Source: Selaginella moellendorffii (lineage: Eukaryota > Plantae > Lycopodiophyta). From it: DNA of 64,000 nt. Within the stretch, counting starts at the first letter, position 1. Every line of letters starts with the position of its first letter. The notes under the pieces are model-generated. The model saw only the letters and a program-made list of their open reading frames with translations, made no database searches and had not been told where the DNA came from. Positions 11,139-64,000 of this stretch are shown piece after piece. The position numbers and the translations under genes were made by a program. The DNA is taken from contig NW_003314305.1 in NCBI RefSeq assembly GCF_000143415.4, positions 1,566,750 through 1,630,749 on the forward strand. Direction: 5' to 3'.

Positions 11139-11241
<103 letters not shown>

Positions 11242-12585: not shown

Positions 12586-13152
12586 TGTGAGACACAAAAT
12601 CCCTAGGCCCCAAAGTGGAGCCGGAAGGGCGCCACGTGGTAGTGGCCGAAGCGAGAGCCAAACGAGCGTAACACGTTTGGACCAAAAGCTCCGACTTGAA
12701 AAGTCAAGAGCGGGAGTGGAACTCCCAACGAAGTGCTCGAGGAACGAGCACGAAGCGAGCAAAAAGCGAGGCTCCAAAAAGGGACCCGAGATGGACCCGA
12801 GATGGAGTCCGAGATGGAGTCTGAGATGGAGTCCGAGGTGGACCCGAGATGGAGTCCGAGATGGAGTCCGAGATGGAGTCTGAGATGGAGTCCGAGATGG
12901 AGTCCGAGGTGGACCCGAGATGGACCCGAAATGGAGTCCGAGATGGAGTCCGAGGTGGACCCGAGATGGACCCGAGATGGAGTCCGAGATGGAGTCCGAG
13001 ATGGAGTCCGAGGTGGACCCGAGATGGACCCGAAATGGAGTCCGAGATGGAGTCCGAGGTGGACCTGAGATGGACCTGAAATGGAGTCCGAGATGGAGTC
13101 CGAGATGGACCCGAGATGGAGTCCGAGATGGACCCGAGATGGAGTCTGAAGT

Positions 13153-13187
<35 letters not shown>

Positions 13188-14289
13188 TCGGGACCGAGAA
13201 CGAGACCGAGCCCGAGCCCGAGACCGAGCCCGAGCCCGAGTTTGAGTCTGAGTCCGAGTCCGAGTCCGAGGCCGAGTCCGAGTTCGAGTCTGAGAGGGTG
13301 AAAGCCCAAAGTGTTCGTCTCCCAGACCCTGGGGGGTTTGGTGAGCTCCAAAAGTATAGTAGGGGGAGGACTGCAGTGGAGCCAGTTTGGCCAGGAAAGG
13401 CCAGTTTGGCCCAGGAAGGCTGGACCCAGTGTTGGGTTATGAGCTGCCCACTGGGAAGTCCAAGACTAGAGTGAACACAAACCGACAAACGGGGTAGCTT
13501 GGTGAAGTGTTCAAGAGTCGGCTCTAGTTCCCCCGAGAGATCGACTGGCCGATGCTCCCAGTCCAAGTGTGGGTGGCACTACCTACTTGGATACCTGTCG
13601 TGGCTCAACGGAACCTCGCTCTAAGCCCATGGCTAGAGCACCTAAAGGCAGAAGGCGGGGAGAATACCCATGAGGCCCACGTAGGGCCACAGTGTTCCGA
13701 AATGGTGTCCCAAAGTCCCAGACTGTGGAAAGGAAGAGGGGTAGCCCTCTGGTGGGGTGACCAAGGACACAGTCACACAATGAGGAAGTCCTAGAGGATA
13801 GTGGGACTTAGTGGTCGGGCCGGTGGGCCTTGATCCAGTGGCAGTGTTGGCGAACATAGCCAAGGACAGAAAGGGACTTGGTGGGGACCGGAACAGAGAT
13901 ATTGGGGAAGGCTATTCCCCATGTCTGTAGGCATCCTAAGGATGTTAAGGAGTGGATCTGGGATGATCCCTCATGGACGGATGACCCAGTCTTTGAGAGA
14001 CGGGATGGGAATGTAGGTGGCGTTGGACCACCAGTGTAACCAAGGTAATTGGGCATGGCCTTAGCGTAACGGGCCGATACGTCGGTGGTACCTTGGGGTG
14101 TCGATAATGGGATCGGACACATGGAGCACTTGGACCAAGTGCTAAGGTTGAGTGGCATGGATGCCATTCTCGGGGCTAGCAAGCCCTAAGTCCTGAGTTG
14201 GACTTATGGAGGTTGCGAATGAGACTCCTCCAAGTGGTTAGAGGTGTGGTTAAGTGACTAAAGTAGAATGGAAAAATTAGTCGCTTACA
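12586..14289 (+). mobile_element. 1.7-kb solo-LTR-like insert splitting the gag zinc knuckle
   Basis: Termini are TGTGAG...CTTACA. Removing the insert restores CWACDEVGHTYRCC (CX2CX4HX4C). It shares the GTGAAAGCCCAAAG...CCAAA.GTATAGTAGGG core with the reverse complement of the LTR at 58663-59805. Confidence 0.75.
12782..13293. repeat. 11/12-bp minisatellite (GATGGAGTCCGA / GATGGACCCGA) grading into hexamer repeats (GAGACC, GAGCCC, GAGTCC)
   Basis: Directly visible tandem array inside the nested insert. Confidence 0.95.
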
Positions 14290-17200: not shown

Positions 17201-18120
17201 TTCATGTTTTGACATCTCGGTTGGGGATACGCCACACTTTCACGAGTGCTTATCATCCACAATCAAACGGTCTGGTGGAGCGGCTCGTTCGGACATTTAA
17301 AGGGATGATTGCGAAGTATGTGAACTTTCAGCATTCAGATTGGGATGGTTATTTGCCGTCTCTTCGGTATGCATATGTCACAGGGGTGTAAAGTTCTGTT
17401 GGTGGTTCACCATATAAACTCTTATATGGTCATGATCCAATATTACCAACGGAGCTGGGTTTACCTTCGCGATTGCTGTGAGCTGCCGATGCTAGGTCGT
17501 GGGATCAGTATTTGACGAGCATTCTTCCATTTGTCTAAGCAAAGTCTGTCGAACACTTAGGCCGCGTACAAGTAAAACAACAATGGCGCTACAACTCTCA
17601 TCATTGTCCACCTGCGGAGTACAAAGTGGATGATTTGGTGTTAGTCCGTTTTCCCCATCTTACGGTACGTGGTTTATCTAAGGGACTTCTTGCACAGTGG
17701 AAAGGACCGTATCAGGTGTTGCGGCAAGTTGAACCACAAGTTTATGAGGTTCAGCATAACATTCAGCAGGCCGATCCTCTAGAGATTGTGCATGTGCAGC
17801 GGCTGAAACGCTTCGTACAAAGGGATCAGGAGCAGTTAATGCCACCTACAGATCCACTAATGCCTCCTCTTGATGTTCCTCCGGATCCCGGCCCATCTAC
17901 AAGAGAACCCTGATGGTCTTCCATTATTCCAAGAGAAGGGGATGATGTGAGGGCCAAGTGTACGGCTACGATTCCATATACTAATATTAGCGTAATGGGA
18001 TTTTGGTAACCGTCGGATTGGTTTCAATCTAGACCACTCGCTCCTGTATATAAGCTAGGGTTTTTGGGCTAATTGATATGCACATTTTTTGTATTCCCCT
18101 TCCATATTCCAAGCACTCAC

Positions 18121-18121
<1 letters not shown>

Positions 18122-18177
<56 letters not shown>
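18122..18177. repeat. (TA)n microsatellite flanking the 3' LTR
   Basis: TA run immediately after the LTR end. Confidence 0.95.
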
Positions 18178-18184
<7 letters not shown>

Positions 18185-18829
18185 TACAAAGGGATAAATT
18201 ATTTTAAAAATATTATTTAAGCTTCAAATGTTTGAATGTTGTTATTTTTATTTATTTTAAAGCACACTGATATTTATTTCATATATAATTTTTCAATATT
18301 TTGGATGTTGTTATTTGCTTATTGTTTTTAACTTTGTTATTAACATATGACCAAGTATATAAAATAAAATTCTTATAAATATCTTTATAATTTAAATTAG
18401 TTATGTTTTATTGGTAAATTACTTTTTTATTAATTTCAAAAAAAGTTGTACTTTTTTAAAAATAAATAACTCCAAATAACACTCAAATAATGCTCAAGTA
18501 GTAATATTGTTTTAATTAGGAGCACTATTGGTTTAAGTTTAAAGATGATTAAAAATAAAAAATCAACATTTATCACCCCTCTAAACATTAGTGCTATCTA
18601 TTAATTATTAATATCACAAAGAATATATTAAGGATCACAAAAGGAAATAATTTCTAAATTGTTTATTAAATATATATAACTGATGCAATCTTCTTTGAGA
18701 GCGTAAAATTTATACTATGAGTTGAAGCACTTGGTTGATCTCTCTCACCACTCAGTTTTGGCACATTTCCAATCACTTGACATAAGAGGTTTTGCTTTTA
18801 AGTGGGAAAAATGAAATGGCCCTCTACTT

Positions 18830-19439
18830 CTAGAAGCTCGAAGCCTTCTGCTGCCAAAGGTTGATGATATCGGTGGCCTGGTTGAGAAGGATAATTGTAC
18901 GCCTTCGTGAGATCCACGGCTTGCTCTCGAGCTTGGCCTTGAGCTCCTCCCACGCATCCTTCTTGGGCCAGAAGTAAAACGGCGACAGTGGAATTGTACC
19001 ATGGCCCGGCACAACTTGATCCAAGGCAATTCCAATGTTCTTCTCCATCCAAAGAAATCGTAGCGACAATATCTGCTTGCCTGCGGACCTTATAGCCAGC
19101 TTGTCTTTCTGGCCAAAACAAAAAAAAGAAGATCAAAGTTGGATAGACAAACATTCCTCGTACCTTGGATAGATTGTCCGAGTAAACGCTGCTCGTGGGC
19201 TCAGGAGTCTCTTCTTGGGCATCCTTCGAGTCTTCTTCATCTCCCACAGCCTTGGGAGTTTCAGCGTTTTCTTCCAAGGGAGCAGCGTCGTCCGAGGCTG
19301 AAGCTCTCAAGGAAAGCATCCTCCGTTGCCTTCTTGATAGCACTAAGCTTCCTCTCTGAGTAGAAAAGCAACCCAAATTCACCTGAGAAGGTCCGCACGG
19401 CTGAATGCCCACTCCCGGCCAAGCCATCGCCATAGTCAT
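18830..19439 (-). CDS. PSRP3: Plastid-specific 30S ribosomal protein 3 (PSRP-3/Ycf65), 2 exons
   Basis: Transit-peptide-like N-terminus and the diagnostic [66 protein letters not shown]. Confidence 0.93.
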
Positions 19440-19534
19440 CGCAAGCGATAGCCCTCGCACCCTCACGATTCGAACTCCAGACCTGCTTTGGAAGATAAGT
19501 GAGAGAAAGACAAAACTCGCTTGCGAAAAAAATT

Positions 19535-20773
19535 CTACACTGTACCAAGATCAAACCACAGAAGCTTTCTTCGAGGTCGACCAAGAAGGTGTGATTCCGC
19601 TGGAGTCTCCTCGGCTTCGAAAACAAAGCCAGACTTCGTGTAAAGTTTGAAAGCCGGCTCGTTGGATGTCACAACGTGAACGTAAAGATCACTCACACCT
19701 GTAGCAGCCAAGGCGTCAAAGGTCTGGAAAAACGAGAAGCTCTTCAGTACCCCATTCTCTGGCAGTCCGTTTTGCTTCGCGAACTAGAGCCGTGCCTACA
19801 CCCTTTCGACGTGCTTCTTGAGCGACGCAGAAGTTTGAAATGTAGGCACGCTTGTATGCTGGATCAGAGTCCTAGAAAAAACAGTAGAAAACGTGATACA
19901 CGATGGAAAGAAGAAAGGTTCTTACCTTTGGTCGAGAGCCAGATATCTCACCGGGTATTAGTCGACCTCGATTCACATCAAGTGTACCAACAACAAGGAG
20001 ATCTTGGCCAGCAACAGTCACCTATATCATCACTCAATCATCCTAGAGCTATCAGCCACCCAAGGAAAAAAAAGATTATAGATAGATAGATGGATCTATC
20101 ATCTATTTATCGGTCTATCTATCCTAGAGCTATCAGTCACCCAAGACAAAAAAAAAAGAGTATAAAACAACCAAGAGTTTACCTTGCAAGCTTTGCGAAT
20201 CTCGTCTGTGGAAGGAGGAAAATCTTTGAGTGGAAGTAGCGCGACTACGCACGCCACACGACCGAAACCATCCTCGGTTCCAGCGATCTTGGAGGAAAGA
20301 GTCTTAAATTCGAGGGAGGCCATATACTTTTGGTGTGCCTGTGAAGAAACAAAGAAAAAATCGTTAGAGAGAAACGATCGAGAAAATCTTTGTGAAGAGA
20401 GGAAAGATCTCTTCGAAATCTACGAAAGAAAGAGGCTGCGTTGCTATCGATCGACCATGAAATGATCAAGAAGAGATATTTCTAGACTTACTTCTTGTGC
20501 TGCGATGGAGCGTCCCTCGGGATAGCTGTAGAATGACCTTGCGCGCAAGAATGCGGCCGCCGAGAGCTCCGATTCACAAGCCTGCCGGACGAGGAGGAGC
20601 TCCTCTAGCCCGCCGCTGGCGAGATCGCGAAGAACCTGTGAAGAATGCGCGGGAATGGAAGCCCTGGTGCTGATCACGATCCTCGCGAACGGCGGAAGGA
20701 GATTTGGAGCGGCGGACGATCGAGGATTCCACAGAGGAGGGATGGATGCGTGGCAGGCGGCGGCAAGCGCCAT
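19535..20773 (-). CDS. GNAT-family acetyltransferase, probably plastid-targeted, multi-exon
   Basis: Transit-like N-terminus; AAAFLRARSFY; VVGTLDVNRG..PGEISG; RAYISNFCVAQEARRKGVGTALV (acetyl-CoA motif A); LYVHVVTSNEPAFKLYTKSGF. Confidence 0.85.
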
Positions 20774-20830
20774 AGCCAAGATCCTCTTCTCAAAATTTCT
20801 CCAGGGCAAACAAGAAATTTTTTAAAAGCC

Positions 20831-22529
20831 ATGGCGGGTTTGGGGCTCAAGCGGTTTAGGGTTCTTCACATTCTTCTCCGGGGATGGCCGCCACCGCCAT
20901 CGCTAGCGCCATCGTCATCGCCATCGCTATCGCGCAAGGTATCGATCTGCAAGTGTAGCATTTCCTTCTCTACATCTGGCAATCCGCCGCCGCCTCCTGC
21001 GCCGCTCGCGATCGCCTCGATCGCTCCCTTGCGGCCGACGCTTTCGGTCATGGAATGGACTTGCAGCCGATGCACGCTTCTCAACAGCGCCGGCGATGCG
21101 TGCGCGGTTTGTGAGCAACCGCGGAAGGAAGAGGCCGCGAGTGAAATGCCGGGTCTGGATTCGTGGAACTGCCCGGCGTGCACGTTTCTCAGCCCCGGAT
21201 CGATGCCTCGCTGCGGTATGTGTGACACTGAGAAGCCCCTGGATCAAGACCCTCCGGTAGTGACCAAAGAGATCACGGCAAAAGAGGAGGTGATTTTGGA
21301 GCCGAGCTCCAAGAGGCAGAGAGTGGACGAGCCACAGCCATCGTCCGAGGAAGAGGAAGGCCAGGCCGCGGCTCCTGTCAATCCAGGGCAGTCCTCAAAC
21401 GCTCTCCTTCGCGAGCTCCATATGGAAAGAATGTCGAGGAAGAACTCCATAGCTTCTTCTGCTGGTATGTATGAGGTCTTAATCGTTTACAAACTTTCAC
21501 TGCTTTTCTTCTTTAGGTGTGTCAACTTCTTCCACTTCCAAGAACATTGTCAGCGACAGTATCGTTTTTATGACGTACAACGTCTGGTTTCGTGAGGATC
21601 TCGAGCTGGAGCGAAGAATGGAAGCGATCGGAGAGCTTATCAGACAGCACCAACCTCACGTCATATGTTTCCAGGTATTTCTTTGGTCGTTCATATCTCT
21701 CTTTGCTGATAAGTGATTTTCACAGGAAGTTACTACCAGTATCTATGCGATTTTCCAGCGATCGAACTGGTGGAGTGGATACAGATGCTCGGTTAGCTCA
21801 GAGCTCGCGGCAAAGCGAGCTTACTTTTGCATCCAGGTGAAGCTTTCGCTCGCGTTCATTCTGTTGCTTAGTCTCAAGTGCGTATCTTCTCCTTTTCAGC
21901 TTAGCAAGCTACCGATAGACAAGTTCTACCGCAATCCCTTCCACAACACGATCATGGGAAGAGAACTCTGCCTGGCGGACATCGATTGCGGCAACAGCAC
22001 GCAGCTGGTCGTGGCAACAACGCATCTGGAAAGCCCGTGTCCAGCGCCCCCGAAATTCGATCAGATGTTTAGCGCCGAGCGCGTTGCACAGATGAAGGAG
22101 GCGCTCGCAACGCTCAAGCCGCTGCCAAACGTTGTCTTTGGAGGAGACATGAACTGGGACGACAAGCTAGACGGTCAGCCTCCTCTCGAGAATGGCTGGA
22201 TGGACGCATGGACACAACTCCGCGCAAAGGAGGTGAGAACTTTTGCTCTCGTTTTTATGGCAGAGTTTTGATTCACCGTGTGTTCTTTGCAGCCTGGACT
22301 AACTTACGACGCAAAGGCCAATCCCATGCTCACTGGAAGCAGGCTACAGAAGCGTTTGGATCGAGTGTTCTACCATTTCCGCGACTTTGAGGTGGAAAGC
22401 ATCGAGATGATCGGGACGAAACCGATTCCAGGCTTGACGTTTGAGAAGGAGACGAAGAAATCGTTGCTCAAGCTCCCGGTTTTACCCAGCGATCACTTTG
22501 GTTTGGTTCTCAAGATTCGCAAGAAGTAG
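20831..22529 (+). CDS. TDP2: TDP2-like EEP-domain phosphodiesterase with two RanBP2-type zinc fingers (alternative ATG at 21050)
   Basis: WTCSRCTLLN..CAVC and WNCPACTFL..CGMC; MTYNVWFREDLE..RMEAIGELI; ICFQEV; MGRELC; ATTHLESPCP; FGGDMNWDD; TYDAKANPML; LDR; PSDHFGL. Confidence 0.88.
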
Positions 22530-22934
22530 TCGGCATTCCTTGGATACATTGATTGGCAAATCAGTGGATTCTAAGGATATTCTTGATTTGTGCTCTTTAG
22601 GATTTAAAATAGATTCTATTTTAATCTGAGGATTATTATTGTGAAATTACTTTTTAAGAATTTAGTACCTTTTGTTGAGATAAAAACTTTTTCAAACTCA
22701 TAACCTTTATTCCCGAGTTTGAAATATTCAAATAATTAGAGAAGTTTTGCCTAGATCCAGCTTTTGTATAACAATTGAGCCGCAGGATCTGGCCAATCAG
22801 AGTCGTCGTAACTCGTTCTTAGAACATCCTCTATTATGGATAATCAAGCTCGAGACGCTAGACAACATGAAAATGCCTTGAAAAGCCTTTGCCTGGGCCT
22901 TTGCTTTCACGTAGCTTGGGATTGTTTGCGCCAA

Positions 22935-23110
22935 TCAATGCTGGAACTTTCCCCGAGGATTGAGCTTGGCCAGCCGGGGTAGCTCTCCAATCTCTTTATC
23001 TGGGATGGAGCCCGAGAATCTGTTGTGAATTCCTGAGATAGGTGCTATTGCTGAAGGAGGTCTTGATGGATTCTTCTCGTGGACGTCTAACTCTTGGAAT
23101 AGCTTATTGA
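22935..23110 (-). pseudogene. Remnant of an LRR ectodomain related to the BIR-like copies
   Basis: LDVHEKN...HNRFSGSIPDKEIGELPRLAKLN resembles FDVHNNS...HNRFLGPIPGQIGVLPRLTKFD. Confidence 0.6.
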
Positions 23111-23328
23111 TGTTGTGCGCCGGCCAACCAGCGGTCGCCACGGTCTGGTCTCAGCGAGTGATTTCATGTTTGGATGAATTCTTCCCCCTCTGTCTTGGTG
23201 GCCGCTATCGCGATTGGGACGGAGCCCAGCAGCGATCTTCGCTTTTCTCTTTGCAGGTTCCAGTCACCTGAGAGGAGCGGAATGTGAGAGTTGTTCCGTG
23301 TCTCGATCTGGGTATTTGGGCGCTAGCG

Positions 23329-23918
23329 AGATTAGAATTCTGATTCTGTTTGTCTACTTGTCCAAACACAAAGGTGGTGGAGTCACACCTAGAAATGAGG
23401 TTTTTACCTAGCCGGGCTTTGATCTAATCGGGAATTCAGGAGCTTAAGTTCTAGCGCCCTAATAGAATTAAAGACATGCAGCTGATTTGAAGTTGTCTGC
23501 TACCTTGCCAAAGAGGATCACAGTGTACAGTGCATACTCGTTGTTGAAGATGATTGAGGAACCTGATCAAAATCTTCTCAGTCGAATTCAGTGAGACTTT
23601 TTCTTAGCATTTCAGCCATTAGAGTCATCCGCACCGAGTTGAGTTCTACTCAGACTGATCTGTAAGAAAAAAATTTAAGTCGTCTTTGTGCTTGGAAACA
23701 TTGCCTTGGATCATATCTGAGAGGATTCATAAGTGGATACTTCGCCTCGTCCTCGCTAGCCTAGAGGCTGCTCAGCCGGTCTTCTCGGGTACTAGCTCCA
23801 CAAACCAGGGTTCCCTCAAGTGAGTGATATGGCTCCGAGAACATTGCAGTCACTTATGGCTCTGTCACCATTGCAGTCTTCCTCTCGTCCAGGCCCTGGA
23901 CTGCCTTGGTGATTCCAA
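23329..23918. repeat. ~600-bp segment with an inverted copy at ~27730-28350
   Basis: GATTAGAATTCTGATTCTGTTTGTCTA (23329) is the reverse complement of ~28324-28350. GTCACTTATGGCTCTGTCACCATTGCAGTCTTCCTCTCGTCCAGG (23849) is the reverse complement of ~27755-27799. Confidence 0.9.
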
Positions 23919-23920
23919 TT

Positions 23921-24147
23921 TCTCACCTCCTTTGCGCTGAGTTGTGTCCATGCGTCCATCCAGCCAGCCTCGAGAGGAGGCTGGCCGTCTAACTTGTCGT
24001 CCCAGTTCATGTCTCCTCCAAAGACAACGTTTGGCAGCGGCTTGAGCGTTGCGAGCACCTCCTTCATCTGTGCAACGCGCTCGGCGCTAAGCATCTGATC
24101 GAATTTCGGGGGCGCTGGACACGGGCTTTCCAGATACGTTGTTGCTA
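23921..24147 (-). pseudogene. Inverted partial copy of a TDP2 exon (22015-22239)
   Basis: ATTYLESPCPAPPKFDQMLSAERVAQMKEVLATLKPLPNVVFGGDMNWDDKLDGQPPLEAGWMDAWTQLSAKE is near-identical to the TDP2 exon and keeps the AG|GTGAGAA donor. Confidence 0.92.
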
Positions 24148-24695
24148 CCTCTTTGAGCTCGGCTCCAAAATCACCTCCTCCTATTGTGATCTCTTTGATC
24201 AAGCCCCCGGATTTCTGGACCGTGAGGCATTTTAGCTGCGACAATCGGGCCCATCGACCGATATTTCTAGGCGCTCTACACACCTTGCGCGACAGAACTC
24301 TCCCTATGGCCCTAGCGCTACTCTGAAAAATGCGCACCGACGGCCCAGAGTGGGTGTGGCGCATTTTTCAACGGCGTGGATTTCACGTGGCAAAGTCGTT
24401 GGAAAGGTCTGGTGGCTGATGGTGTTGACTTTTCTTGACTGTGAGATTGGAACTTTAATCTACAAAGAAGGTGCAGTGAGTATGAACCTTGAAAATTGCG
24501 TGGAGCGACAAGATTCTCATCAACTCACAAAATACTTGATGGTTGATTGTATTATCAAGCATTAGCATACTTCAAAATATGTAAAACTACAAATCTGGAA
24601 GAATAATTTTGAAACAACGTCAACCAAATAATAGAAGAGAGGTTTGGATGACATCGGAATCTTGATCTTCGCCGTCTAAATTCTTGTTGACTATA

Positions 24696-48900: not shown

Positions 48901-50900
48901 ATTCTGTCACCAGTTAGTCTTGCAGAAAAAAAAAGAAGACAAATAAAAAAAACTCACCTGATCAGTGCTCCATGAGCTTGGATTGGTGCCTCTAATCCAG
49001 CAAAGAAATGAAAAAAAAGAGACTAAAATGAACACAAGCCAAGCCATACCACCTGATTATACAAGCCTCCAAATTCAGTGACCATGAATCCCTCACTCCT
49101 AGATCCTCAAGGCTAAATTTAGATCCCTCAAGGCCTTTAAGGCCAGGGCCCTTTAAATAGAATGAATGAACTTTGAGTCCATACTATGTATCAGTTAATA
49201 GTGAGCATTCAGCCCAAGGAGGGAGCACAAAGCGACATTAGAACAATCCTAAAGCATTCAACCTCTTAAAGCTAGGACCAGCATGCAAAATGGAGCCAAA
49301 TGGAGTTTAACAAAGAGTTACACAACTATACTTACATTATTTTCATTGTTGAGATTTGTGCATGGATCCAAAACATGGTGGTCATCACCAATAGGTCTCC
49401 AGACACCTTCACAGGAATGATAACTACAGTGCCAAGTAGCCTGCAAACGAGCAGGATTTAGTACGTTGAAAGAAGAATGGAAGTTTACTTACTTCCTTTG
49501 CTCCGGGTCAAAGACAAGTTTGCACAAGAGGGACACCATCATGAACAAAGCTTTCACTATGATGGAAACACTGACCACCCAGAAGAGTGTGTGCGGGTTT
49601 CGTGTGCTTATGGAATCTGTGACAAGCTTACATACAAGAGCACCAGAGCTTAGAGGCATAACTTAACACAGCACAGGAGAAGAGAAGAAAAATTTCCAGA
49701 GTATTTACAATCCAATTCGTCCATGCTTACCGAGGAACTTGCAGAGGGAAAGGTGCCACTCTCATGCAAAACTCTAGACCTTGCCTGCTAACGCTGCTAA
49801 AAGAGAAAGAGAAGATTCTTTAGTGAGCTACCAAAAAAGAGAGACCATAAATGAGAGCACATACCATCCAGGCACGAATGTGAAATCACGCTCTAGCGAT
49901 CTGGACAGCATGTTCTGGGTGCTACAGATCTTTGTAAACTAAGGCATCGCCACCAAGCTTGAGAAGCGGATACTGAAAGAACCAAGAGTAAGCAAGCTTA
50001 CATAAAAAGTCATGTTTTGCTACGAGATCTCCATGCCAACAACAGCCTCAGCATGCACTTCATCGACATTCCAGATTCCCTCAAGGCCCTTCAGATGGAT
50101 GGTTGCAGCCAGATCCATCGCCGCTAACACCATTAGCCAGTACCCTGCCACAGCTGCCACCACAGCCAAATCCCTTGCTAGTGCCTCCACCACAGATCCA
50201 TCGCTGCCACCACGGTTGAATCCCTTGCCAGTGCCACTGTGATCCATTGCCACTATGGTTACGGCCAGATTTATTGCCTGCCACTGCTAGATTCATTGCT
50301 GCTAGATGACACACTCTTGCTGCCAGATCTACCATGGTCGCTGCCATTTCCACACTCCCACGGCCAAATCCAACCCTAGCATTGCCACCCAACAATCCTA
50401 AACATCTTTCGATAGAGGAATGTGTTGCATGGAGGAATGTTGTCCAAGCACGTCTCACCTCTTAGTGTTTATCAAAACTCAAGAATTACACTTTATAAAT
50501 TTTAACCAAAAATTTTATTACACTAAGAATGAAAGCTTGGAAATGGAATTCTTTGGAATTCCACTATATAAAAGTCTATGTAGTCAAGAAACTTTTAGAT
50601 CAAGATTTTCTTGGAATATACTATTTAATTAAATAATCTTCCTTCATTTCCTAACTTCTTGGGGTGGTCACTCTTATATAACTGTATATATCATATGTGT
50701 ATATGGATTGGGGTTATTTTGGGTCCAAACCGTACGTATACATACAGACTTTAGGGTTGAGTTTAATTTAAAATTTTTTGTATGTACGGGTAGGGGAGGA
50801 GGCAGAGCTCCTCTAGGGCTCTCTACAGTAGCAGGCTGTAGAGGGCAATAGATCTCAGACACAGTAGGTATGGAGTGTGATGTTATTGTATATGTAGAGG

Positions 50901-52177
50901 ATGGGGATTAAAAGAAGCTTGTGGGTTTCGTCAGGGTTCAGAGGGAGTGTTCTTATCATCAGTTCCACGAAGCTATTATTTCAGACGAGATTGAGGGTCT
51001 TGTTAAGAGTGATTTTGTCTTCTTGGGTGCCCTTTCCCTTGCAATGACATGTAGGCAGGAGAGATATCCGCTTTTTGGAGCTGAAGTTTTAGTTGGTGTG
51101 CTTAATCTTGCAGTAGTAGAACCAATTAAAGAGGGGCAATCTTCAGCAGCAACCAGTGAAGCTCATGAAGAAGATCCAATTAGATTTTTACCTGGTTTGA
51201 ATTCCAAACTTGCTTCAGCTAGAGAGATACATGACTAGAAGAGATCATTCAAGCAGAATGAGAGAAAGTTGAGAGCAAAAGGGAGGAAAGACAAGTTTGA
51301 ATTGTTTTCATATGACCAGGATGGATGCGCTCACTTCAAAATCATGTGTCAGGAGTGTGGAATTGTTTATGGAGGAGGCCTGAAAGACACCTGTTACAAT
51401 TTCGTTTCAAAGCACTGCAGTGGAGTTAGGCATGAAGCAAACTACATGAAAAATCAGTTGCAGCGGGAGAAAAATGATCAGGAAAAAGCTGACACGGAAA
51501 GTCCTATTGAGGGTGCTTATGAAGGTGCTGAACTTGCTAGTCATGAGGAAATAAAAAATGAAGTGGAGAAGCTGATGAATGGAACTGTGGAAAGGTTTTG
51601 CGATGAGAACAACGTTTGCTTCACTCTCTACGAACCAAGTGTAGGAAATTTTGAGAGGAGGAACAACATTCAAGTTTGCTGCAAGCATTGTGAGAAGACA
51701 TTAATGCTTTTTCCTCCTGCCGGGAGTCTCTTGAACAATCTGATGGTTCACATTTCTGGGAATAAGCACAAGAATGCTGGACTGGAGGTCGGCCAAAGGA
51801 AACCTCCTTAGCTATTTCACACGAGGTAAGAAATTGCATTCCAGTTTTTGTAAAGTTAATAATGTGTGTTGTTTAAATTTTTTTCAGGAAAAGGAGTCTC
51901 ATCAAGCAGTTCTTCTCAGAACTTCATAGCATCTCCAAATGAGTCTTCAAGTAAGTAGCATTTCATATGCTTTACATAGTGTGATTTCTTGTATAGTATA
52001 ATCTGTTGTATATTGATAGGAATTGAAAGACTTTGCTTTGGATACTAGCAAAACGATTACAAATATGGCTTGAGTTTTGTGAATGTTCATCCTCTTCTCC
52101 AAGATGTAAAAGAGGGAGGTCATTGGTTCTGTGATCCAAACTTCAAAGTAGCAGCAGATGGTGTTGTTGTCAACGGA
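50901..52177 (+). pseudogene. N-terminal part of the transposase with two C2H2/BED-like zinc fingers
   Basis: CQECG..HCSGVRH and CKHCE..NNLMVHISGNKH. In-frame stop at ~51236, GT-AG introns, and truncation by the LTR at 52178. Confidence 0.6.
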
Positions 52178-55100
52178 TGTAGCGCATGTGGTTTTTACCC
52201 TTATCCTATGGTGCTTTACCATAGGATAACACCACGAAGCGGAACTTAAACCCTTTTTGTGCCACGTGACAGATGCCATGTGTCACATGACACGTGTTCA
52301 TAGGATAGTGGTGTGGAACCCGAGGTTCAGGGCCTTGAGCCACTGAACGAAAGAGCGGTACCAAACTCCCAAGCATGGAGCCAAGGAGCAATAACACTGG
52401 ACCACGGAGCAACTTCTGAGCATGCAGCCCAAGGAGCGAAGGGGCAGGAGCTCGGAGCGACTTGGAACAATCCTGGAGCAACCAGTATCCCAATGCCAGG
52501 ACCAGCACATAAAACGGAGCCAAATGGTGTCTGGCGCTATTTCGGCATACCGGTGGCCTAATGTGAGGATATGGATACCCCACCAACTAGCATGGTATGG
52601 AACTTAGGCTTAGACCCAAGCTGGATGTAGAACAAGGACAGGCACGCAAGCGGGAGCTAGACTATGCCTCAGGTTGGTCAGCCATGCTCGACTTATCCAC
52701 TATCCCTACTATACATTTGGAACCCCCCATCTCTACATTCCTGTAGCGCACATGGTTTTGACCCTTTATCCTATGGTGATTTACCATAGGATAACACCAC
52801 GAAGCGGAACCTAAACCCTTCATATGCCACGTGTCTAAAGGAACGTGGTGTGGAACCTGAGTTTCAGGGCCTTAGGCCACTGAACGAAGGAATGGTGCCA
52901 AACTCCCAAGCATAGAGCCAAGGAGTGACGGAACCGAACCACGGAGTAACTCCCGAGCGTACAGCCCAAAGAGCGAAGGGATAGGAGCCCGGAGCGACTT
53001 GGAACAATTCTAGAGTAACCAGCATCCTAATGCCAGGACTAGCATGCAAAATGGAGATAAACGGAGTCTGATGCTATTTTGGCATACTAGTGGCCTAACG
53101 TGAGGATATGGGTACTCCACCAGCTAGCATGGAATGGAACTTGGGCTTAGACCCAAACCAGACGTAGAACAAGGACAGGCATGCAAGAAGAAGCTAGACT
53201 ATGCCTCAAGTTAGTCGGCCATGCCCGACCTACCCACTATCCCTATTAGTGGACGAACACCATTGTGTTCAGGCCAATCTCTACATTCTGTAGATATGCC
53301 AAATGAGCAAATCTAGACACTTTCTATAAATAGTATTTGGGACCAGAATGAAACTAACACCAAGGGCATGATAGCAAGGGTGTTTGGCAGACATGGTAAG
53401 CTATCATCCAGCGACATTGAGGGACTAATCTCAATACGCGAGGGTTCTTGTCACTAGCCAGTGCAAGACATAATGAGACGGGAACTCCTTACCGGGCTAA
53501 GTATGCTTAGCTAATAATATGTAGGAATTCCGTCCATATGCTCGTCCGGTCTAAGTACATTTGAAATGCCCAGTTAACTCCACTAGCACAAAAGGGACTG
53601 ATAAAGGGTCCAGCAATATTGACCTCCTACCGTCATATTCGTGACACTCTCCCCCCCTAGGGAAGATCGACGTCCTCGTCGATGCATACTCCAGTCTAGA
53701 ATACCGCCAAGGAAACAACTTCTGAAAAATTTCACGGTACTCACACTATGTGAGAAATGCACCAACTTAAATGAGTTAGGAGGCAACCTCTTTGTTTAAC
53801 GCAGATGCGCTACCAGCTCAGACACCTTCCGGCCGTCGCTGACAAAGAACTGGGTGTCACCCAGCTACAAAAGTGTGATATACCCCTACCCACAAGGACA
53901 TAGAGAGAGAAGCCAGAGGCCCCAACCCTCCTGAGCAAAGAAACTAAACCCGTCTGTAAGGTTTAGATAGACTACTGTAAACAGGCAGGTAGAGTTGTTT
54001 ACACGATCATGCCCTTTGAACAGAATAAGGAACATTGATAGAGAGGCAGGTGATATGACCAGTCGACAGTAGCTACCCCATGACTAGAGATTTCACCATG
54101 CACACGAAGTGCCGAAGCCAGTCTGGCTACACTGGCCCAACTCAAAGATCAATATATGGACTATATCAAAGTCATAGACAATGATATCTTAGAGATTAAG
54201 TATCAGTGAATAAAGCTTAGATTAGAACACAAAAGTATTCTAAGGAAGTTATCATCTGATAAACAAGTATTACAATATAGGAACCACCAAGATCACTATC
54301 ATTGGAAAACATAGGAGTCACCATCCAACAAAATTCAATAGCAAGTATATCATCAAGTAAACTCAATGAGAAAACTAACTACCGAAGATTGTAGACAATA
54401 TACTAAACAACTTACCAAAGATAACTCAAAGAACACAAAGTATCATTAACTGGCAAGCAAGAGACTCGCGAATGTATCACCCAAAGGAAATAACATCTTA
54501 ATCTATCAAGACTAACTTGAGCAACAATCAACAAAACAGAATGAATGTGGTAATACTAACAAACACTTAGTCATGCCAACCATTGCACAAGCCAATCTGA
54601 ATAGATTTCAGTCAATAATACAAAGGAAATCACATTGCTTAAGCAAGTGTTAGCAACATTCTAATTGATGTCTCAAACCTAAGAGACCAATCCAGAGCAA
54701 ACCACAAAGAACATGTGGTAATGCGAAAAGCCAAAAACCATCAAAGAGAACAACTAACCATTATGAAAGATCATCAACCATCCCATCAATAAAGAGATGA
54801 ATAATCATCATTGAAGAAAAAATCTACCATCCCGAAGAACGGCAACTTAGTCTATATCAACAATAATCAAGCAAAACCTTTTGATAAAGATAATCAACTA
54901 TTCTAGATGATAGTCAATCATCACCAATGATTGCTAGATGTAAATATTAACTTCAACATCGAAACTAACATGCCAAAATGCCTTCCCTAACAACTTCTAA
55001 CAAATGGAATAATGAGCATAAAACTCAAAGAACCAAAAGCTCGAAGAAGCCTATAGCCAAGTCTTGCCCAATAATGATCACAAGTCTTATAGAAGCTAAC

Positions 55101-58100
55101 TTCAATATTAAAAAAGAAATCATGACACAATCCATAATATCCTCCTCAACACATCCATAAGCAAAACTTCATGATGCAAAGCTAATGAAGAGCATATCTG
55201 CATCAATCCAAAAGCTAAGCATAACGAAGCTATGCTTAACAAGTGATCATTAAACGATCCTTCATGAATCCATCTATAGCAAAACGTAACACACATCGTA
55301 ATAAACACAAAAGGAATCATCAATGATTAATATATTTCAACTCAAATCCAATAAGGATTCAAACATTCTAATATCGATCACTAACTCTTCCTTTTGTAAA
55401 GCTAGCATAGTCCATGACTGAATCATTTTTCAAGAAAAATCCAAAGTTCAACCTTTACTAAACAATCTCGTCTAGAACACACTAACTCAAACTTGCCACT
55501 CAGCTCATTTGAACGTCAATACAGTAGCTAACTAACAAAATGCAGGAATGCCAACAACACAAAGCTACAACCAAATCATCAATACCATCTCCATCTCGAC
55601 TAATGAAAATCAATATCAATCCTATAAAGAGATACCTCATTTCACTCAAATCTCAACATTAACAATGTTAATGACAAAACATCACTTTAATGCTATCAAC
55701 ACCAGGACAAAGCTAAAAGAAAGCAAGAGTGAATCACCACCCAAAACTCTTTAGCAACCAAGCTAACCAAAGTCGAAGATACTTTAGTCAATATCTAAGA
55801 TCAGTTCTCCAACAATACCCAGTTATAGATAACACATCATCAAGGAGTGATTCACCACATCCAAGACTTAATGAAATCCAACACCACGGACTAAACGTAT
55901 CCAAATGATATTGACAAAGGTAGAGTCAACATGCCAACATAAAAAACCCATGTAAGTTTAACAACACGATCCTCCGCAGCACCATCCGGTAAAGCAAGCC
56001 CATCATGGCTATAATCATCATCGAATGAAGCAAGTGTCAAACAGTCCTCGACAAAGTCTATAAGCAATCACTAGTTGCCAAGCAACCGACAATCACTCTT
56101 TCAACTTGCCTTCACAAAACCCAAACACTAACTCTTGTCATCAAGTTATATATTTGTCCAACATGAATATGATACCACAAGTATGAGATAAAAGTTCATA
56201 CACAAGCACAAACTAAATGACCACTCGAATCCAACTCAACCGCAATAAGTTCACTAATGCATTTAGCCAATAGCTTTGAGCATGCCTTGAAGAGGCTAGC
56301 TATGCATGATTAACACTTAGTTGAAACTAAAGTGAAGACCATGAGATGGACTCATATCGGTACACAACCTCCTCACAAACAAAGCTATAGTACGGGTACC
56401 AACATCTCAAACTTAAACAACTAAGTTGGATATCACCATCCTCAGCCAAGGCGCAGCGCTACCAAGACTAAGTCAAGATCAGTGAGAGCTCACTACCCTC
56501 ATAAAGTCTAACAAAATGCAAGGTGTAAATTGCCACCAAGCATAATGCTACAGAAAGGCATAAGGGTCACCTTTCTTAGAAAAGCGCAACAGCCACTTTT
56601 CTACATCAACTCCAGACTCTATCCAACTCAATTGCCTTAGCCCTAAAAGTTAGTATCCCTTTTAGGTTGCATCTTACAAACTATCTACTAAAGTTTAAGC
56701 CAACCAAAGTTAACTCTAACCTCTTCACTAGTTTGTATTGGCTTACGAAAACGGAAAGGTTTTTGAGCAAAGTAATCAACAGATCAGCCATTGGAAAAGC
56801 CTAAGAAAATTTGTGGAAAATTTTCCATCTTAGAGAAAAAATGACTCTCAATTCAGAAATGCAAACTTTCAAGACTCAATCAACTTCCTCTTACCTACTA
56901 CTTCACATAGGTTCACCTCAACACAAATTCTTATGATCCATCAATAGTATGCTTAAGCATTGAACATCTTTTGCCCATTTTTCCGATATCCAACATCGAT
57001 ATCCACAAAATGCGAATGAAACATCCAAGGCTTAATCACGAAGACTATATCTTCAGATATTCATATTGCACTAACACTCTTCTTCAATCATTCTCAAGAT
57101 CAATGTGAAGCCAAAACACTAACACGAAAAATGCCATAGAAAATAAAACTCTAAGGGAAATTCTCATCACTTGAAATAACAATGCCACTTCCACTAACAC
57201 AAGTGTTAGCGATATCAATGCCTCAACTACACACCTTCTCCATCCAACAATTTACTCCAAGTGTTAACGGATAAACTAACAAGCTATAGCAAGTGAATGC
57301 TATAACTCTTTCCAACACTTTATGGGCAAACCCTTAAGAAAATAAAAAACAAACTTAAATTTAGCATAATGGACCACCTTCAAGAATTCAGTTAAAGCTA
57401 CTACAATGCTACTACTTGCAAGTAGACTAGCTTCTCCACCAACCACTTTGGGGTTGATTATCATTTTACCAAGTAACTTTGTACACATATTGCTCATTAT
57501 CACATGGATATGATATAAGTAGCACAATGACTTAATCATTAATTGAGTAACACCATGAGCAATGCCCATGTCACTACTACAAAGGTTTACAAAAACAAGT
57601 ATCAAATGTCAAGTCGATTCGACAAAATGCAATATAAATGCCACACCCCACCGATAGAAACTACAACACCCAACACCACTAACTTTTGTTCACAACACGG
57701 ATAAGCTCATGCCACTCTCTTTCCAACAAATCTCAAAACTAATCCAACACCAAGCTATTCAAGGAGCAATAACAAGGTTCTTCAGAAAAGAATTGAGCAT
57801 TGTAACCCAAGCCTTCTAATAGCAAGCCTAGACAAAATGGTTTAGCATTTCACCGCTATCCATCCTATAACTCACCATTTGTAAGATTATCATTTCCAAC
57901 ATACATTAAGGTAGGGACTTTTGATTGCATGATGTGAACACAAGTAATGAGTTAACACCTCGTTGCAAATCATCTCTCCAAGAAAAAATGATTTACGTGT
58001 TTGATCCTTCATCCCTGATGACTCTTTTTTCGGTTTCATCTTTGACCAAACCTCAAGTTTGTGTTCGCACTGCCTTCAGTCTAATCCAAGAAAAGTTTAT

Positions 58101-60157
58101 GAGAGAGCACAACAATGACTACTTGAATCAATAGACTAATCCTTACAGTCTTGATTGATCCACTTCTATTTATGCCTAGGAAGGATCCACTAGTGCCGTG
58201 CTAAATAGCTAGGGACCAGCCTATTTGCCACTCATAGTAAACCTAGGGAAGGTTTACTTCTACTTATGGTACATGGAACAACTCATGGAACCATCGATAG
58301 GTTAACATTAATCCTGCCAACTCAAAGTGTAACCTTGAGTTGCTAATGTGCCTCACCTATAAGCCCAAGCGTAAACTCGTATACAACAGTACACCTCAAA
58401 TCCATCCTATGAACCCAAGAGCAAGCTCACATCATAAGGTACAACAAGGTAACTAAATCCATACCCAAGGGACAATAACTTTAACAATGTCGTTATCACA
58501 GTCAGAAAGAGCTTTTGGAAAATAAGAATATAACTCATGCGAAGTCTTTGCACCAAAACATATACCCACTCGGATCATTATTTTCATCTCTGCGTATGCA
58601 ACAAGACTAGTTGCCCAATCTCATTGGATAGAACTCGCCGAGACTCATTCTCTGATACCAAATGTAGCGCACGTGGTTTTGACCCTTTATCCTATGGTGA
58701 TTTACCATAAAATAACACCACGAAGTGGAACCTAAACCGTTCATGTGCCACGTGACAGATGCTACATGTCACATGCCACGTGTCCAAAGGAACGTGGTGT
58801 GGAACCCGAGTTTCAGGGCCTTGAGCCACTAAACGAAGGAACGGTGCCAAACTCCCAAGCATAGAGCCAAGGAGTGACGGAACCAAACCACGGAGCAACT
58901 CCCGAGCGTATAGCCCAAGGAGTGAAGGGACAGGAGCCTAAAGTGACTTGGAACAGTCCTAGAGTAACCAGCATCCCAATGCCAAGACCAGCATGCAAAA
59001 TGGAGCTAAATGGAGTCTGACGCTATTTCGGCATATTGGTGGCCTAACGTGAGGATGTGGGTGCTCCACCAGCTAGCATGGAATGGAACTTGGGCTTAGA
59101 CCCAAGCCGGATGCAGAACAAGGACAGGCACGCAAGTAGAAGCTAGACTATGCCTCAAGTTGGTCGGCCATGCCCAACCTACCCACTATCCCTACTATAC
59201 ATTTGGAACCCCCCACAGCCCCCCCGTTGAGGAACACACGCTTTGGGCTTTCACCCCAAGCCTCCCTTAGTATCAAGAGTTAGTGTCTGGGACAAGCTTG
59301 AAACTTACTAAATATGGAATGGCGCTAGAATGCGAATTTGGACACGGGACGAACACCATTGTGTTCAAGCCAATCTCTACATTCCGTAAATATGCCAAAT
59401 GAGCAAATCTAGACACTTTCCATAAATAGCATTTGGGACCGGAATGAAACTAACACCAAGGGCATGATAGCAAGGGTGTTTGGTAGACACGATAAGCTAT
59501 CATCCAGCGACATTGAGAGACTAATCTCAATACGCAAAGGTTCTTGTCACTAGCCAGTGCAAGACATAATGAGACGGGAACTCCTTACCGGGCTAAGTAT
59601 GCTTAGCTAATAACATGTAGGAATTCCGTCCTTATGCTTGTCCGGTCTAAATACACTTGAAATGCCCAATTAACTCCACTAGCACAAGAGGGACTGATAA
59701 AGGGTCCAACAATACTGACCTCCTGCTGTCGTGGCAATAAAGTAAGATTATCTGTAAGGACTGGTCGACAGGTAACTTTCGATACCTGAAGTCACATTCA
59801 CGACAATTCCGTAGATATGCCAAATGGGTGTTTGGCAGACACGGTAAGCTATCATCCAGGAATATTGAGGGACTAGTCTCAATACGCGAGGGTTCTTATC
59901 AAGCCAGTGTAAGACAGAGCAAAAGAGAACTAAAAAGCTAGGCCAAGTATGTTTGGTTGAATAGACACTTAGGAATTCCATCCTTATGCTCATCCAGCTA
60001 AGTACAGATGCAAAGTCCAATTTACTAACACTTGAACAAAAGGGATTAATAAAGGGTCTAGCAATACCGACCTCCTACCATCGTGGCAGTAAGGTAAAAG
60101 TGTCCGTAAGGACTGGCCGACAGGTAACTTTTGATACCCGAAGTCACATTCGCGACA
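52178..60157 (-). mobile_element. Solo LTR (52178-52741 + 59811-60157) split by a nested element
   Basis: Ends are TGTAGCGC...CGCGACA, flanked by TSD ACGGA/ATGGA (1 mismatch). The two halves rejoin as CTCTACATTCC|GTAGATATGCC, as in the intact LTR copies. Confidence 0.88.
52742..59805 (-). mobile_element. LTR retroelement (LTRs 52742-53646 and 58663-59805) with no recognisable coding capacity
   Basis: 5-bp TSD ATTCC at 52737-52741 and 59806-59810. PBS TGGTATCAGAG (tRNA-iMet type, reverse complement at 58650-58660) and PPT (reverse complement of CTCTCCCCCCCT at 53647). The 5-kb interior has no ORF above ~100 aa. Confidence 0.92.
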
Positions 60158-60162
60158 ATGGA

Positions 60163-63088
60163 ACATTCAAATCAAAATAGTGTCTAAGAGTGACAAACAA
60201 CATCTATGGATTCAAGAACAAGCAGTGCAAGCTTTGTATGACAATACCAACTTGTAGTGATTTCAAAGGACGTGCTTTATGGGAAAGCAAAGCAACAATA
60301 CCACAAGGACAAAGATTGAAGAAGCGTGGAATGAGACTTGACTACATGACTACAGATGAGCACATAGATAGCAGCAGGCTAGTGCAAGCAAAGAATAGAA
60401 GGCTGGCATTGGAACTATCGACCACAAGATGCAGGATAACAGCTCTTTCAGTTCATTGCCGGAGCTTAAAAGAAACTTTGAAGGAAAGTGCCATTCATAA
60501 GGATATCAGAAAATTTAGCTCTGATCTCAAACAATCTTGGCAACAAGGCAAATTCGAGGGCAAGGAGATGGTTCTTCACGTGATGTAAGATTTGTTGCAG
60601 GGAATAACTAGGAAAAAACAAGGAATGAGGTATTTTTTTATTTATTCAAAGTTTTTTCCTTACACTCTTAACAGGTACCATGAAACCACGAAATGGATTT
60701 TGTGAGTAACAAAAATGTGGGGGGGGGAGCAGGCTTAACAACTTCCTTCACTTGAACCTTGGATTGCCAAGTTTGTCGACAACATGAGAACAAACTTTAG
60801 ATACACAATAGGTTTGCAATCTGAGATATTTTTTAACCTTTCTAAGGTTTACAAGTTCAAGATGGAGAGTTTACAGCTCAAGTTAGGGAATGTGCCTGTT
60901 TTGATTGCAGAAGACGAAATAGTTATTAAAAGGATGATCAGATGGATTGCTCATGATGATGCTTTGCTTGGGTTTTGTGGAAAGAAGGGGGAAGGTCACA
61001 AGTGTGTGAACAGTTTTATCGTGAAGGTTGGGAATGGAGAAGCAGGTTATGAACAGATCACTCAGGATTTTCTGGACAACGAAAAAGCTCACTATGCACA
61101 AGTGTTGATGGTTAATCCATTGCACAAACAGTTGCCATGCTTAGTTCTCTCTATTCAGCTTACTTGCAATCGGTTTACAGCTTCAGATGTTCAACAACAA
61201 TGGAACTCGATCCATCAATTATGGGGACAGCACCTTCATAATGTTGTTGGCCCCTTGATTGGCCATTCATTGGATGGAGACCAGAGAAGGCGTAAACTAA
61301 TGCTTGAAGAGATAAATTTGGGGGATACAACAACAGGAACTTACTCTATACCTTGGTCAGGGTGGCTATTCTCTGGAAAGTGGAACTCAACAAGGAACCT
61401 TTTGATACATGATCAAGACATGTGCATAATGGGAAGAAGCTGATCAATCCATTGCATAGTGCAATAAGACAATTGTTTTTGGGGGATGAGTTTGTGCATT
61501 TGAATGACATTTGGGAAGTTTTCGAAAACTTTCATGGTAAACACAGACTGCAACTCGGGGATGTCATGCGCTCTGATAGACAAAACTGGGGTGCTGCTCA
61601 ACGACTTTGTAGCAGGCCAGTGCAAGTTTGTCTTTCGAATATGTGAGAAACAACATACAAAAGACCTTCACGTACATTGGGAACTGAAACTTATCTTGCT
61701 GTGGTGGCATCATATATTGATATCTTTTTGCACCCGTACTTGAGCCTTGGAGAGCGAGTGAGAGCTGCATCAAAGGTGTCCTTCTTCTTTTGTTTATGGA
61801 GGTTGTGGATTCTGAAAGAAAGCAAGTGGAACCTGAAACACAACTTCATCAGCAAGGAAACCTTCTTGGACATTCAATTATCATGTCACTTTGTCATCCT
61901 TCTAATTAGGTATGTTTCATATATATTTTTCTTTTGTTAATTTTTCTTTTGAGATAGATATTTCCGGGATCACCATTCATATTTGCCAGTCCCAATTAAT
62001 AGAACCAGTTCTGATATTTGCGAGAACTTTTTCTCCAAAATAGGAGGAATGATTGGGAATGAACGGTGTTATGACAGAGCTGACGTTGTTCATAGTGCGA
62101 CTAGTATGAACATGCTAGCAGAATGCGAGGCAATAGGTACATTGCTTTTCTCTAAAGCTCACAAGAAACAGGAAAATATTTGGGAAAAAATAGAGCATGA
62201 TGGGAAGAGAGTAGTAGCAGACTTAGGGGATTACAGTTTGGTGGAGACAGATGCTCTGATAGTTAATGAGTTGATTCAGGGTAAAGCCAAAGCACAAGAA
62301 CTTCTTCATGGCCTTGGCATATCTAGAAGAGATTGGTGGGATAAACCTGAAGACTTTGAGGATTTTCACAAGGTTTTAGAAAATTCCGGAGAGCATGATA
62401 TAGTAAATCAGTTTGAAGAGGAACATATAGTAGGAGAAGAAGCTACTGAAGAAGCTCCTGAAGTAGCAAGTGAACTGAGGCATACTTTTGATGCTGTTCT
62501 GGATCATATTGAAGATTCTGAGTCATTAAAAGTGGAAGCAACAGTTTTAATTGACAGGAAGAAAATCTGCAAGTCGACCATTGTTTCTCAGCTAAATGGA
62601 AATCCATTTCTCTCCAAAGACCGGCTTACACGGGTGAAGAATAACTTGACAATTTATGAACCAGTAAGAAATCTCAGTGCACAAACAGCTCTTGGTGTTG
62701 GAGTGGTTGTGCATTGTGGTTTGAAGAACAGGAAGGAAGTCATTTGAAGTTTGTTTGGTATGTTAGTCGAATTTTTTCCATGAGGAAAAAAGTGAACAAT
62801 ACCTAGAGGGACACAAGGGAAGTGATTGAATTAACCAATCTTCCAATTGATTCTGCTGATTTTCAAATGAACCTATGCTACTACAGGGAATGTGATGCTT
62901 CTGAAGCTGATGACAAAGGGAATTCATGGTGTACATACAACCTTCCTGATAATATGCTAGTGGAACTGACAAATTTGATTGCTCCAGAAGTTGAGAGATA
63001 TTTGCTTCCACAACATGATAGAGAAGTTTTTGATAATTTCATCAAAGATAAAAGCAGGAATATCAATTGTCGTAGAAGGGTGAAATAA
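60163..63088 (+). pseudogene. Catalytic part of the P-element-like transposase (frameshift ~61425, several stops, short introns)
   Basis: VLIAEDE, LLGFCG, GHSLDGD, DQD..HNGKKLIN, DRQNWGAA, LWRLWI..NFISKETF and RTSSDICENFFSKIGG, followed by an acidic region. Confidence 0.8.
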
Positions 63089-64000
63089 TTTTTTTTATTA
63101 ATGAAAAAATATATATGCTTTATGCAAAAATAACCAGAATATTCCACATATATATAAGAATTGGGGGTTTATTTAAGATTTGAAAAAATGCGTATATGTA
63201 AGGGTATGAACAACAAAAAATGTATACTAGGCCCCCTATTCTAAACTTCTAGAATGCAGATGATATATAATGCTTATAAAGAGTGACCACCCCGAGCCTA
63301 ACTTCTATATTTATTATGATAATAAATGAATTTTAAACTTATATTTAAATATAATTCAAACTTTAAGTACATCATATCTATTAATACTGCAATCTAAGTG
63401 ATTAAATATAAATTCTCCATAAACTTTTCACTAAAAAAATCGAGAATAGTCTAATGAATATTCTTACCCTACTAGTCTGCCAAGTTGCTAGTGGTGCTTG
63501 CTGGACTGAGTGCTGCTGGATTGACATAGCACGAGAACCCTTCCATGCAACGCTTCCACCAAAGCCTTTGATGTGTGAGGGAAGCACCTCGGACATTATG
63601 ATCCAGGGAATAGGCTCCCACTGCAGTAGATTGTGGTGGACACACCACCACCCACCAGTGCCAAGAACCTCCACTACAACACCACCACCCACCATAGAAC
63701 TCCCACACACTCCACTGGCTGGATGGACAGTGCTGGATTGTGGTGGAAACACCACCACCCACCACCGCCAAGAACCCCCACTGCCAACACTGCCACCTAG
63801 CACTGCTGGAGACACTGCCACACATGCCCACTAGCTGAACAGACAGCACTAGATCGCGGTGCCACCCATCACCGCAGGCTGCTGGATTTCCTTGCTACTG
63901 CACTGGATCACTGTGTGCCCCACACTCCTACACTGCCACTGAAAGAAAGGAACCACTGGATAGATATTTATTTGGCACAATTGACTATAACGATTTTGCT

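Follow-up and report, generated by a model that had tools for sequence, protein, structure and literature searches.

The 64,000-nucleotide stretch of Selaginella moellendorffii DNA analysed here (contig NW_003314305.1, positions 1,566,750 to 1,630,749 of the forward strand; hereafter the window, numbered from its first letter) contains, at 50658-63296, an insertion that is flanked on both sides by a perfect 8-bp duplication, CCTAACTT. Within it lies a decayed transposase gene, which is read in two parts because a long terminal repeat (LTR) retrotransposon has landed in its middle. We regard the insertion as very probably a dead copy of a multi-copy, cut-and-paste transposon with a P-element-type enzyme. 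A P-like element with complete ends had been proposed at this place in an earlier note, made from the letters alone. The features of the locus are the following.

50650-50657, no strand: left 8-bp target-site duplication (TSD), CCTAACTT, read directly and identical to 63297-63304
50658-50697, plus strand: left terminal inverted repeat (TIR), with an 18-bp core at 50658-50675 and an imperfect extension to about 40 bp
50921-52177, plus strand: 5' part of the transposase gene, decayed, with a ubiquitin-like N-terminal region, two CCHH motifs and a linker
52178-60157, minus strand: nested LTR retrotransposon, with LTRs at about 52178-53711 and 58663-60157
60163-63052, plus strand: 3' part of the transposase gene, with a P-type helix-turn-helix region, an RNase H-like DDE core into which a helical domain is inserted, and a C-terminal domain
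60630-60674, plus strand: predicted 45-nt GT-AG intron, in frame, amounting to 15 extra codons that are absent from the homologues P0009 and P0199
61910-61957, plus strand: predicted 48-nt GT-AG intron, in frame, absent from intronless relatives and containing two stops
62755-63296, plus strand: 3' subterminal region, over-represented in DNA reads (summed contig depth 170-437)
63257-63296, minus strand: right TIR, with its core at 63279-63296
63297-63304, no strand: right 8-bp TSD, CCTAACTT, read directly

Ends, copy number and gene of the element

The left core, 50658-50675, is CTTGGGGTGGTCACTCTT; its counterpart at 63279-63296, taken as the reverse complement, is CTCGGGGTGGTCACTCTT, which differs at one base. 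Beyond this core, an imperfect inverted repeat extends to about 40 bp (78% identity). When the whole window was searched with the 18-mer end pattern, allowing up to three mismatches, these two sites were the only ones found (chance expectation 0.04). Both ends start with a sequence of CTYGGGG type and not with the canonical CA, and removal of 52178-60162 leaves a body of 4,654 bp. Direct reading and the pattern search thus bore out what the earlier note had described at the ends, namely 18-bp TIRs with one mismatch, a perfect 8-bp TSD and non-canonical termini, as well as a native body of about 4.6 kb after removal of the LTR element.

The right boundary also shows in sequencing reads. In a DNA run, depth drops from 265 to 20 at 63295, and four contigs from the same run have loose ends at 63296, from where they continue into unlike flanks. 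The run yielded 364 short contigs at 85-99% identity on 60163-63400, and the element therefore belongs to a multi-copy family. Summed contig depth is 20-90 in the element body and 170-437, or 4-10 times as much, in the last 540 bp, before it falls to 20 beyond 63295. This raised depth points to many short non-autonomous derivatives that share the 3' end, so that the last ~540 bp probably also serves as the end of such shorter relatives. Contigs with internal deletions were seen as well, for example one with a joint from 60205 to 61710. As contigs of the DNA run differ from the window at 61419, 60703 and 61644-61645, at least three of the defects described below are private to the window copy.

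Relatives of the gene were collected with an uninterrupted open reading frame (ORF) of 219 aa (60784-61440) as the query against a database of 1.8 billion cluster representatives. The search returned 547 homologues, 264 of them below 1e-10, whose hosts are animals, probably fungi, and land plants; full-length members of the family measure about 1,000-1,530 aa. Intact homologues align collinearly across the nested retrotransposon, and the two parts therefore form a single long gene spanning about 50921-63052, which once encoded about 1,400-1,500 aa. The homologue P0199, for instance, aligns with residues 157-474 on 51140-52138, with 491-901 on 60160-61437 (frame 1), with 896-1371 on 61419-62723 (frame 3) and with 1410-1519 on 62729-63052 (frame 2). 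In tblastn, residues 157-474 of P0199, 110-235 of P0003 and 455-508 of P0194 were placed on 51140-52180, while P0009, P0199 and P0215 gave collinear matches to the 3' part with combined E-values of 4e-88 to 3e-141. Taken by themselves, the ORF pieces of the window had no Pfam match, and phmmer against PDB sequences returned nothing relevant.

In the 3' part, the catalytic positions fall at 60913-60915 (D1), 61273-61275 (D2), 61417-61419 (the D of a D(2)H motif) and 62022-62024 (E), and all catalytic residues of the window copy remain readable. The transposase motifs that the earlier note had lined up with the P superfamily are all present, in the order it gave, at 60910-62048: AEDE at 60910-60921, LDGD at 61270-61281, D..HNGKKLIN at 61417-61450, where it crosses a frameshift, DRQNW near 61580 and DICENFFSKIGG near 62013-62048. 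In the 5' part, the two CCHH zinc-finger motifs lie at about 51308-51460 and about 51635-51781, their domain types being taken from an alignment and its model.

Many stops and two frameshifts, together with the nested LTR retrotransposon, have left the window copy dead. Along the homology path, at least 15 stops were counted (51236, eight in 51809-52046, and 60178, 60586, 60703, 60736, 61644 and 62804); frame 2 of the 5' part (50921-52177) holds nine, and the frameshifts lie near 61419 and near 62725. Judged from the sequence, 60630-60674 and 61910-61957 are read as tiny predicted introns, and excision of both segments gives gap-free alignments to the relatives. The two stops inside 61910-61957 are not taken as defects, because they lie within a predicted intron. 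The observed/expected CpG ratio of the window copy is 0.32. No functional consequence attaches to this dead copy itself.

The retrotransposon that splits the gene has TG..CA ends and is bordered by a 5-bp duplication with one mismatch (ACGGA at 52173-52177, ATGGA at 60158-60162). Its LTRs, each about 1.5 kb long and 86-94% identical, contain internal tandem duplications of about 560 bp (left) and 352 bp (right). The complement of a primer-binding site, which we take to be of the tRNA-Met type, at 58651-58661 places the element on the minus strand. Since a scan of eight internal ORFs of at least 60 aa revealed neither a Pfam family nor a gag-pol domain, it looks like a large non-autonomous (LARD-like) or a fully decayed element. 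Outside the transposon, 50081-50458 and 63402-63849 contain short direct repeats in which CCACCAC/GGTGGTGG motifs are frequent and ORFs overlap on the two strands; these tracts may be what is left of a repeat gene of glycine-rich or proline-rich type, or of a simple repeat.

Fold and superfamily of the enzyme

The core of the homologue P0009 (residues 110-720) was modelled with AF2 from an 80-sequence alignment (pLDDT 95, pTM 0.93). The top Foldseek match of this model was the Drosophila P-element transposase (6p5a; E 9.8e-11), followed by RAG1 (2.6e-3), Transib (7.6e-3) and the hAT transposase Hermes (0.078). In VIA-align, the model superimposed on 6p5a with a Z score of 23.4 over 408 of 442 residues (model residues 37-534 on chain residues 134-566), a span that takes in the helix-turn-helix region, the RNase H core and the insertion domain; the corresponding scores were 12.5 for Transib, about 10 for RAG1 and 6.6-8.0 for Hermes. 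The best structural match, which the earlier note had considered might instead fall to hAT, MULE or another superfamily, thus came out for P, with 6p5a first and Hermes weak. Fold neighbours in the ESM-Atlas with TM 0.62-0.78 carry PF21787, PF21788, PF21789 and PF12017 (THAP9/P transposase clusters), and the clusters annotated as P/THAP9 align over 450-540 residues; the best fold neighbours were unannotated basidiomycete proteins (TM 0.89). The window ORF itself, compared by language-model features, likewise led to ESM-Atlas clusters carrying PF21787 (score 0.92).

The arrangement of the active site agrees with this placement. In the family alignment, D249, D369 and E606 (P0009 numbering) show little or no variation, and the D(2)H motif is nearly invariant. 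In the model, D249 lies on strand E135-143, D369 follows strand E254-259, D422..H425 follow strand E309-312, which corresponds to D(2)H after beta5, and E606 lies on helix H494-506. Beta1 thus carries the first D, the second D follows beta4, D(2)H comes after beta5 and the E sits on the helix behind the insertion domain, an arrangement that agrees with the published P signature, a DDE triad with [C/D](2)H directly after beta5 (PMC8230255). Among Pfam transposase families, PF21787 (P-type RNase H N-terminal) was the sole recurring one, found in 6 of 80 members and always below threshold, and PF21788 (GTP-binding insertion domain) matched P0215 from Calypogeia at E 0.13, directly after D(2)H.

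The N-terminus of the plant clade consists of a ubiquitin-like beta-grasp domain, followed by two CCHH fingers (Cx2C...Hx5-6H) and an AT-hook (G-R-G-R-P). The ubiquitin-like head (P0199:31-110; about 50921-51140 in the window) was modelled with a pLDDT of about 90, and its fold matches are weak yet consistent (ubiquitin-like and SUMO proteins, Foldseek E about 1e-2); such a head is unusual for a transposase. Of the 50 best fold matches to the N-terminal model, most were ubiquitin-like domains and none was a THAP domain. Some members (P0090, P0260, P0045) have extra domains, either a Ulp1/C48 protease (PF02902) or a C-terminal PTM/DIR17-like Tudor domain (PF21743), and the conserved C-terminal domain of the plant clade (P0199 1410-1519; window 62729-63052) may be a candidate for a related chromatin-reader fold.

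Several results weigh against assigning the element to P. None of the Pfam P models (PF21787, PF21788, PF21789, PF12017, PF12596) reached its threshold, the best being PF21787 with E 0.0022 and 18.7 bits vs a cut-off of 24.6. Profiles built from two family alignments returned noise when run against PDB sequences, and missed 6p5a. The THAP domain (PF05485) was absent from the Pfam results of about 85 members scanned (E up to 0.5-1), and the ends start with CTCGGGG or CYCNGGG, not CA, in six of the six elements read. The modelled chain, moreover, belongs to a homologue that is ~30% identical to the window translation and not to the broken window copy itself. The RNA runs X5 and X6 placed 0 reads on the stretch, which is no test of silence, as the organism's presence in these runs was not shown.

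Part of this evidence could also mean that the family forms a separate, unnamed superfamily that has only deep ancestry in common with P, in which case the label would overstate the kinship. The missing Pfam and profile matches would fit such an account, and so would an identity to 6p5a of 15% in the structural alignment, an N-terminal DNA-binding module and ends that both differ from those of P, and a D1-D2 spacing of about 120 residues, a stretch that holds conserved C/H residues, vs 73 in the Drosophila enzyme (PMC8230255). However, the structural match extends over nearly the whole 6p5a chain, including the insertion domain, at about twice the score of the next superfamily, the Atlas P/THAP9 clusters align over several hundred residues, and the family has the TSD length and D(2)H motif of P; the boundary of a superfamily is also partly a convention. 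We therefore consider a separate superfamily unlikely. Fold, target duplication and motif layout support the P-like assignment of the earlier note; comparison at the sequence level, where Pfam thresholds were missed and no THAP was found, does not. The family is very probably a deep branch of the P superfamily, or its sister, without the THAP finger.

Further copies and the origin of the plant lineage

The ends of other copies could be read on several contigs, for which coordinates refer to the respective contig.

Riccia sorocarpa (L001), 9296-19752: perfect 8-bp duplication ACTTTTAG, ORF fragmented
Calypogeia fissa (L002), 5750-15856: perfect 8-bp duplication TGTACAAG, intact ORF of 1,529 aa
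L007, 9460-17202: perfect 8-bp duplication GTCACACT, intact ORF of 1,528 aa
L008, 5-6554: the contig includes just 4 bp of left flank, which match the right flank; intact ORF of 1,523 aa

Copies lacking 8-bp TSDs, which the earlier note had named as the contrary outcome, were not encountered here, the duplication being perfect in L001, L002 and L007 and the 4 available bp agreeing in L008. The ends of L008 form a 25-bp perfect inverted repeat. L005 and L006 have an intact 1,520-aa gene in common, and their similarity stops at an end that reads CTCGGGGGGGGCACT; the left end of L005 was not found within its contig, and neither the Amphiura locus (L004) nor the metagenome contig L003 yielded any ends. 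An end pattern of CTC.GGG, a few bases and, in most cases, TCACT is common to the window, L001, L002, L005, L007 and L008. Two candidate sets of ends were rejected. The Riccia pair 9296/13855 has no duplication, the true partner of 9296 being 19752, and apparent 16/16 TIRs with palindromic 8-mers in L007 are artefacts produced by a long inverted duplication (4700-7000 and 18100-24500) that flanks the element-bearing region.

The Calypogeia copy appears to be a complete element of 10.1 kb whose inverted ends measure about 20 bp; no gene was recognised in the 4.2 kb or so upstream of its ORF. To judge from its sequence, this liverwort copy could be a P-type element that still works. Cargo genes were not recognised in either of the long elements from Riccia and Calypogeia.

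An unrooted FastTree phylogeny was calculated from 107 rows, most of them without an organism name and with 219 residues for the window. The window ORF falls into a clade of 19 rows (SH-like support 99) that holds every named land-plant member, namely two from Riccia and one from Calypogeia (liverworts) and one from Adiantum (a fern), while the named animals (Amphiura, Desmophyllum and Clytia) are all in the sister clade. The earlier note had offered two origins, an ancient relic or a horizontal acquisition. Because the window copy groups with land plants, has a low CpG ratio and carries a diverged nested retrotransposon, the evidence leans towards an old plant lineage rather than a recent transfer.

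Recent horizontal transfer of the Selaginella copies from an animal or fungal donor would be in keeping with the patchy, wide distribution of the family, which includes cnidarians, an echinoderm and probably basidiomycetes, with a branching order inside the plant clade that departs from the species tree, and with the reputation of P elements in the literature as classic horizontal travellers. All named rows in the clade of the window copy are nevertheless land plants, with all named animals in the sister clade, and the window copy is old by both its CpG ratio of 0.32 and the divergence of the nested LTRs (86-94% identity). A recent transfer thus seems quite unlikely.

A 2025 screen of 1,007 plant genomes, which included Pfam P models, reported seven active superfamilies and no P (PMC12973397), and another plant paper of 2025 describes its genome as lacking the P superfamily. 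Our literature searches found no report of P-type elements in land plants and no Repbase names for plant P elements. Plant transposon surveys rely on a short list of superfamilies, and that the plant lineage, though of P fold, is unmatched at threshold by the Pfam P models suggests how P elements may have been missed in them. We tentatively propose, as a possibility that falls somewhat short of an even chance, that land plants (liverworts, a lycophyte and a fern) carry an old, previously unrecognised P-type branch with a non-THAP head, some copies of which may be mobile and which Pfam-based surveys have missed. The P-type enzyme class, which includes human THAP9 and a classic genetic tool, would then extend to bryophytes, lycophytes and ferns. 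A family profile is ready for the re-annotation of many unannotated animal, fungal and plant proteins, and the intact natural copies are candidates for tests of activity and of GTP-dependence.

Mechanism and comparison with known systems

In the proposed mechanism, the N-terminal zinc fingers, the AT-hook and the helix-turn-helix would bind the element ends and subterminal DNA, and the DDE site would excise the element and insert it at a target whose strands are cut 8 bp apart. The helical insertion domain, as modelled, is of the type with which the Drosophila transposase binds GTP.

Among other cut-and-paste systems, hAT elements (Ac, Hermes), which are common in plants, come to mind, since they too have an 8-bp TSD, an RNase H-like core with a large insertion and N-terminal zinc fingers. 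It is nonetheless extremely improbable that the element is a hAT transposon with BED-like fingers, for although the CCHH fingers are of the Cx2C...Hx5-6H type and S-D-x-C-E-x-F-S around the catalytic E has what we take to be a loose likeness to the hAT E motif, Hermes reaches a Z of at most 8 (TM 0.21-0.23) vs 23.4 for P, the hAT dimerisation domain (PF05699), BED and other hAT Pfam families are all missing from the results for about 85 members, and the element ends differ from those of hAT and do not fit its YARNG pattern. Transib and RAG1 are the second-best fold match (Z 10-12.5); Transib, which makes 5-bp duplications, was rejected because its match is far weaker than that to P. Kolobok, judged by the TSD only, was rejected as the duplications are 8 bp of varied sequence and not TTAA, and Zisupton/KDZ was set aside because the Pfam results for the scanned members contained no KDZ-type match.

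Outside animals, P elements with 8-bp duplications are on record from rust fungi and have Repbase entries (PMC3164196). These fungal elements (P-1_MLP, P-2_MLP, P-1_PSt), for which RepeatMasker has a class 'P-Fungi', were compared here by description only; the hosts of the present elements are land plants.

The closest known systems are Drosophila P and the vertebrate THAP9 and Pdre. Classical P elements have ends that begin with CATGATG, carry 31-bp TIRs and make target duplications of 7-8 bp. In the present family, by contrast, the ends start with CTCGGGG, and the enzymes have no THAP finger; their N-terminus holds a ubiquitin-like domain, a pair of CCHH fingers and an AT-hook, and they have a longer D1-D2 loop and a long C-terminal extension. 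Like Drosophila P, THAP9 and Pdre, on the other hand, they combine a helix-turn-helix, an RNase H-like DDE core and a helical insertion in one fold (Z 23.4 against 6p5a), and like the P superfamily in general, they have D(2)H after beta5 and are encoded by single-gene elements with short inverted ends and an 8-bp duplication.

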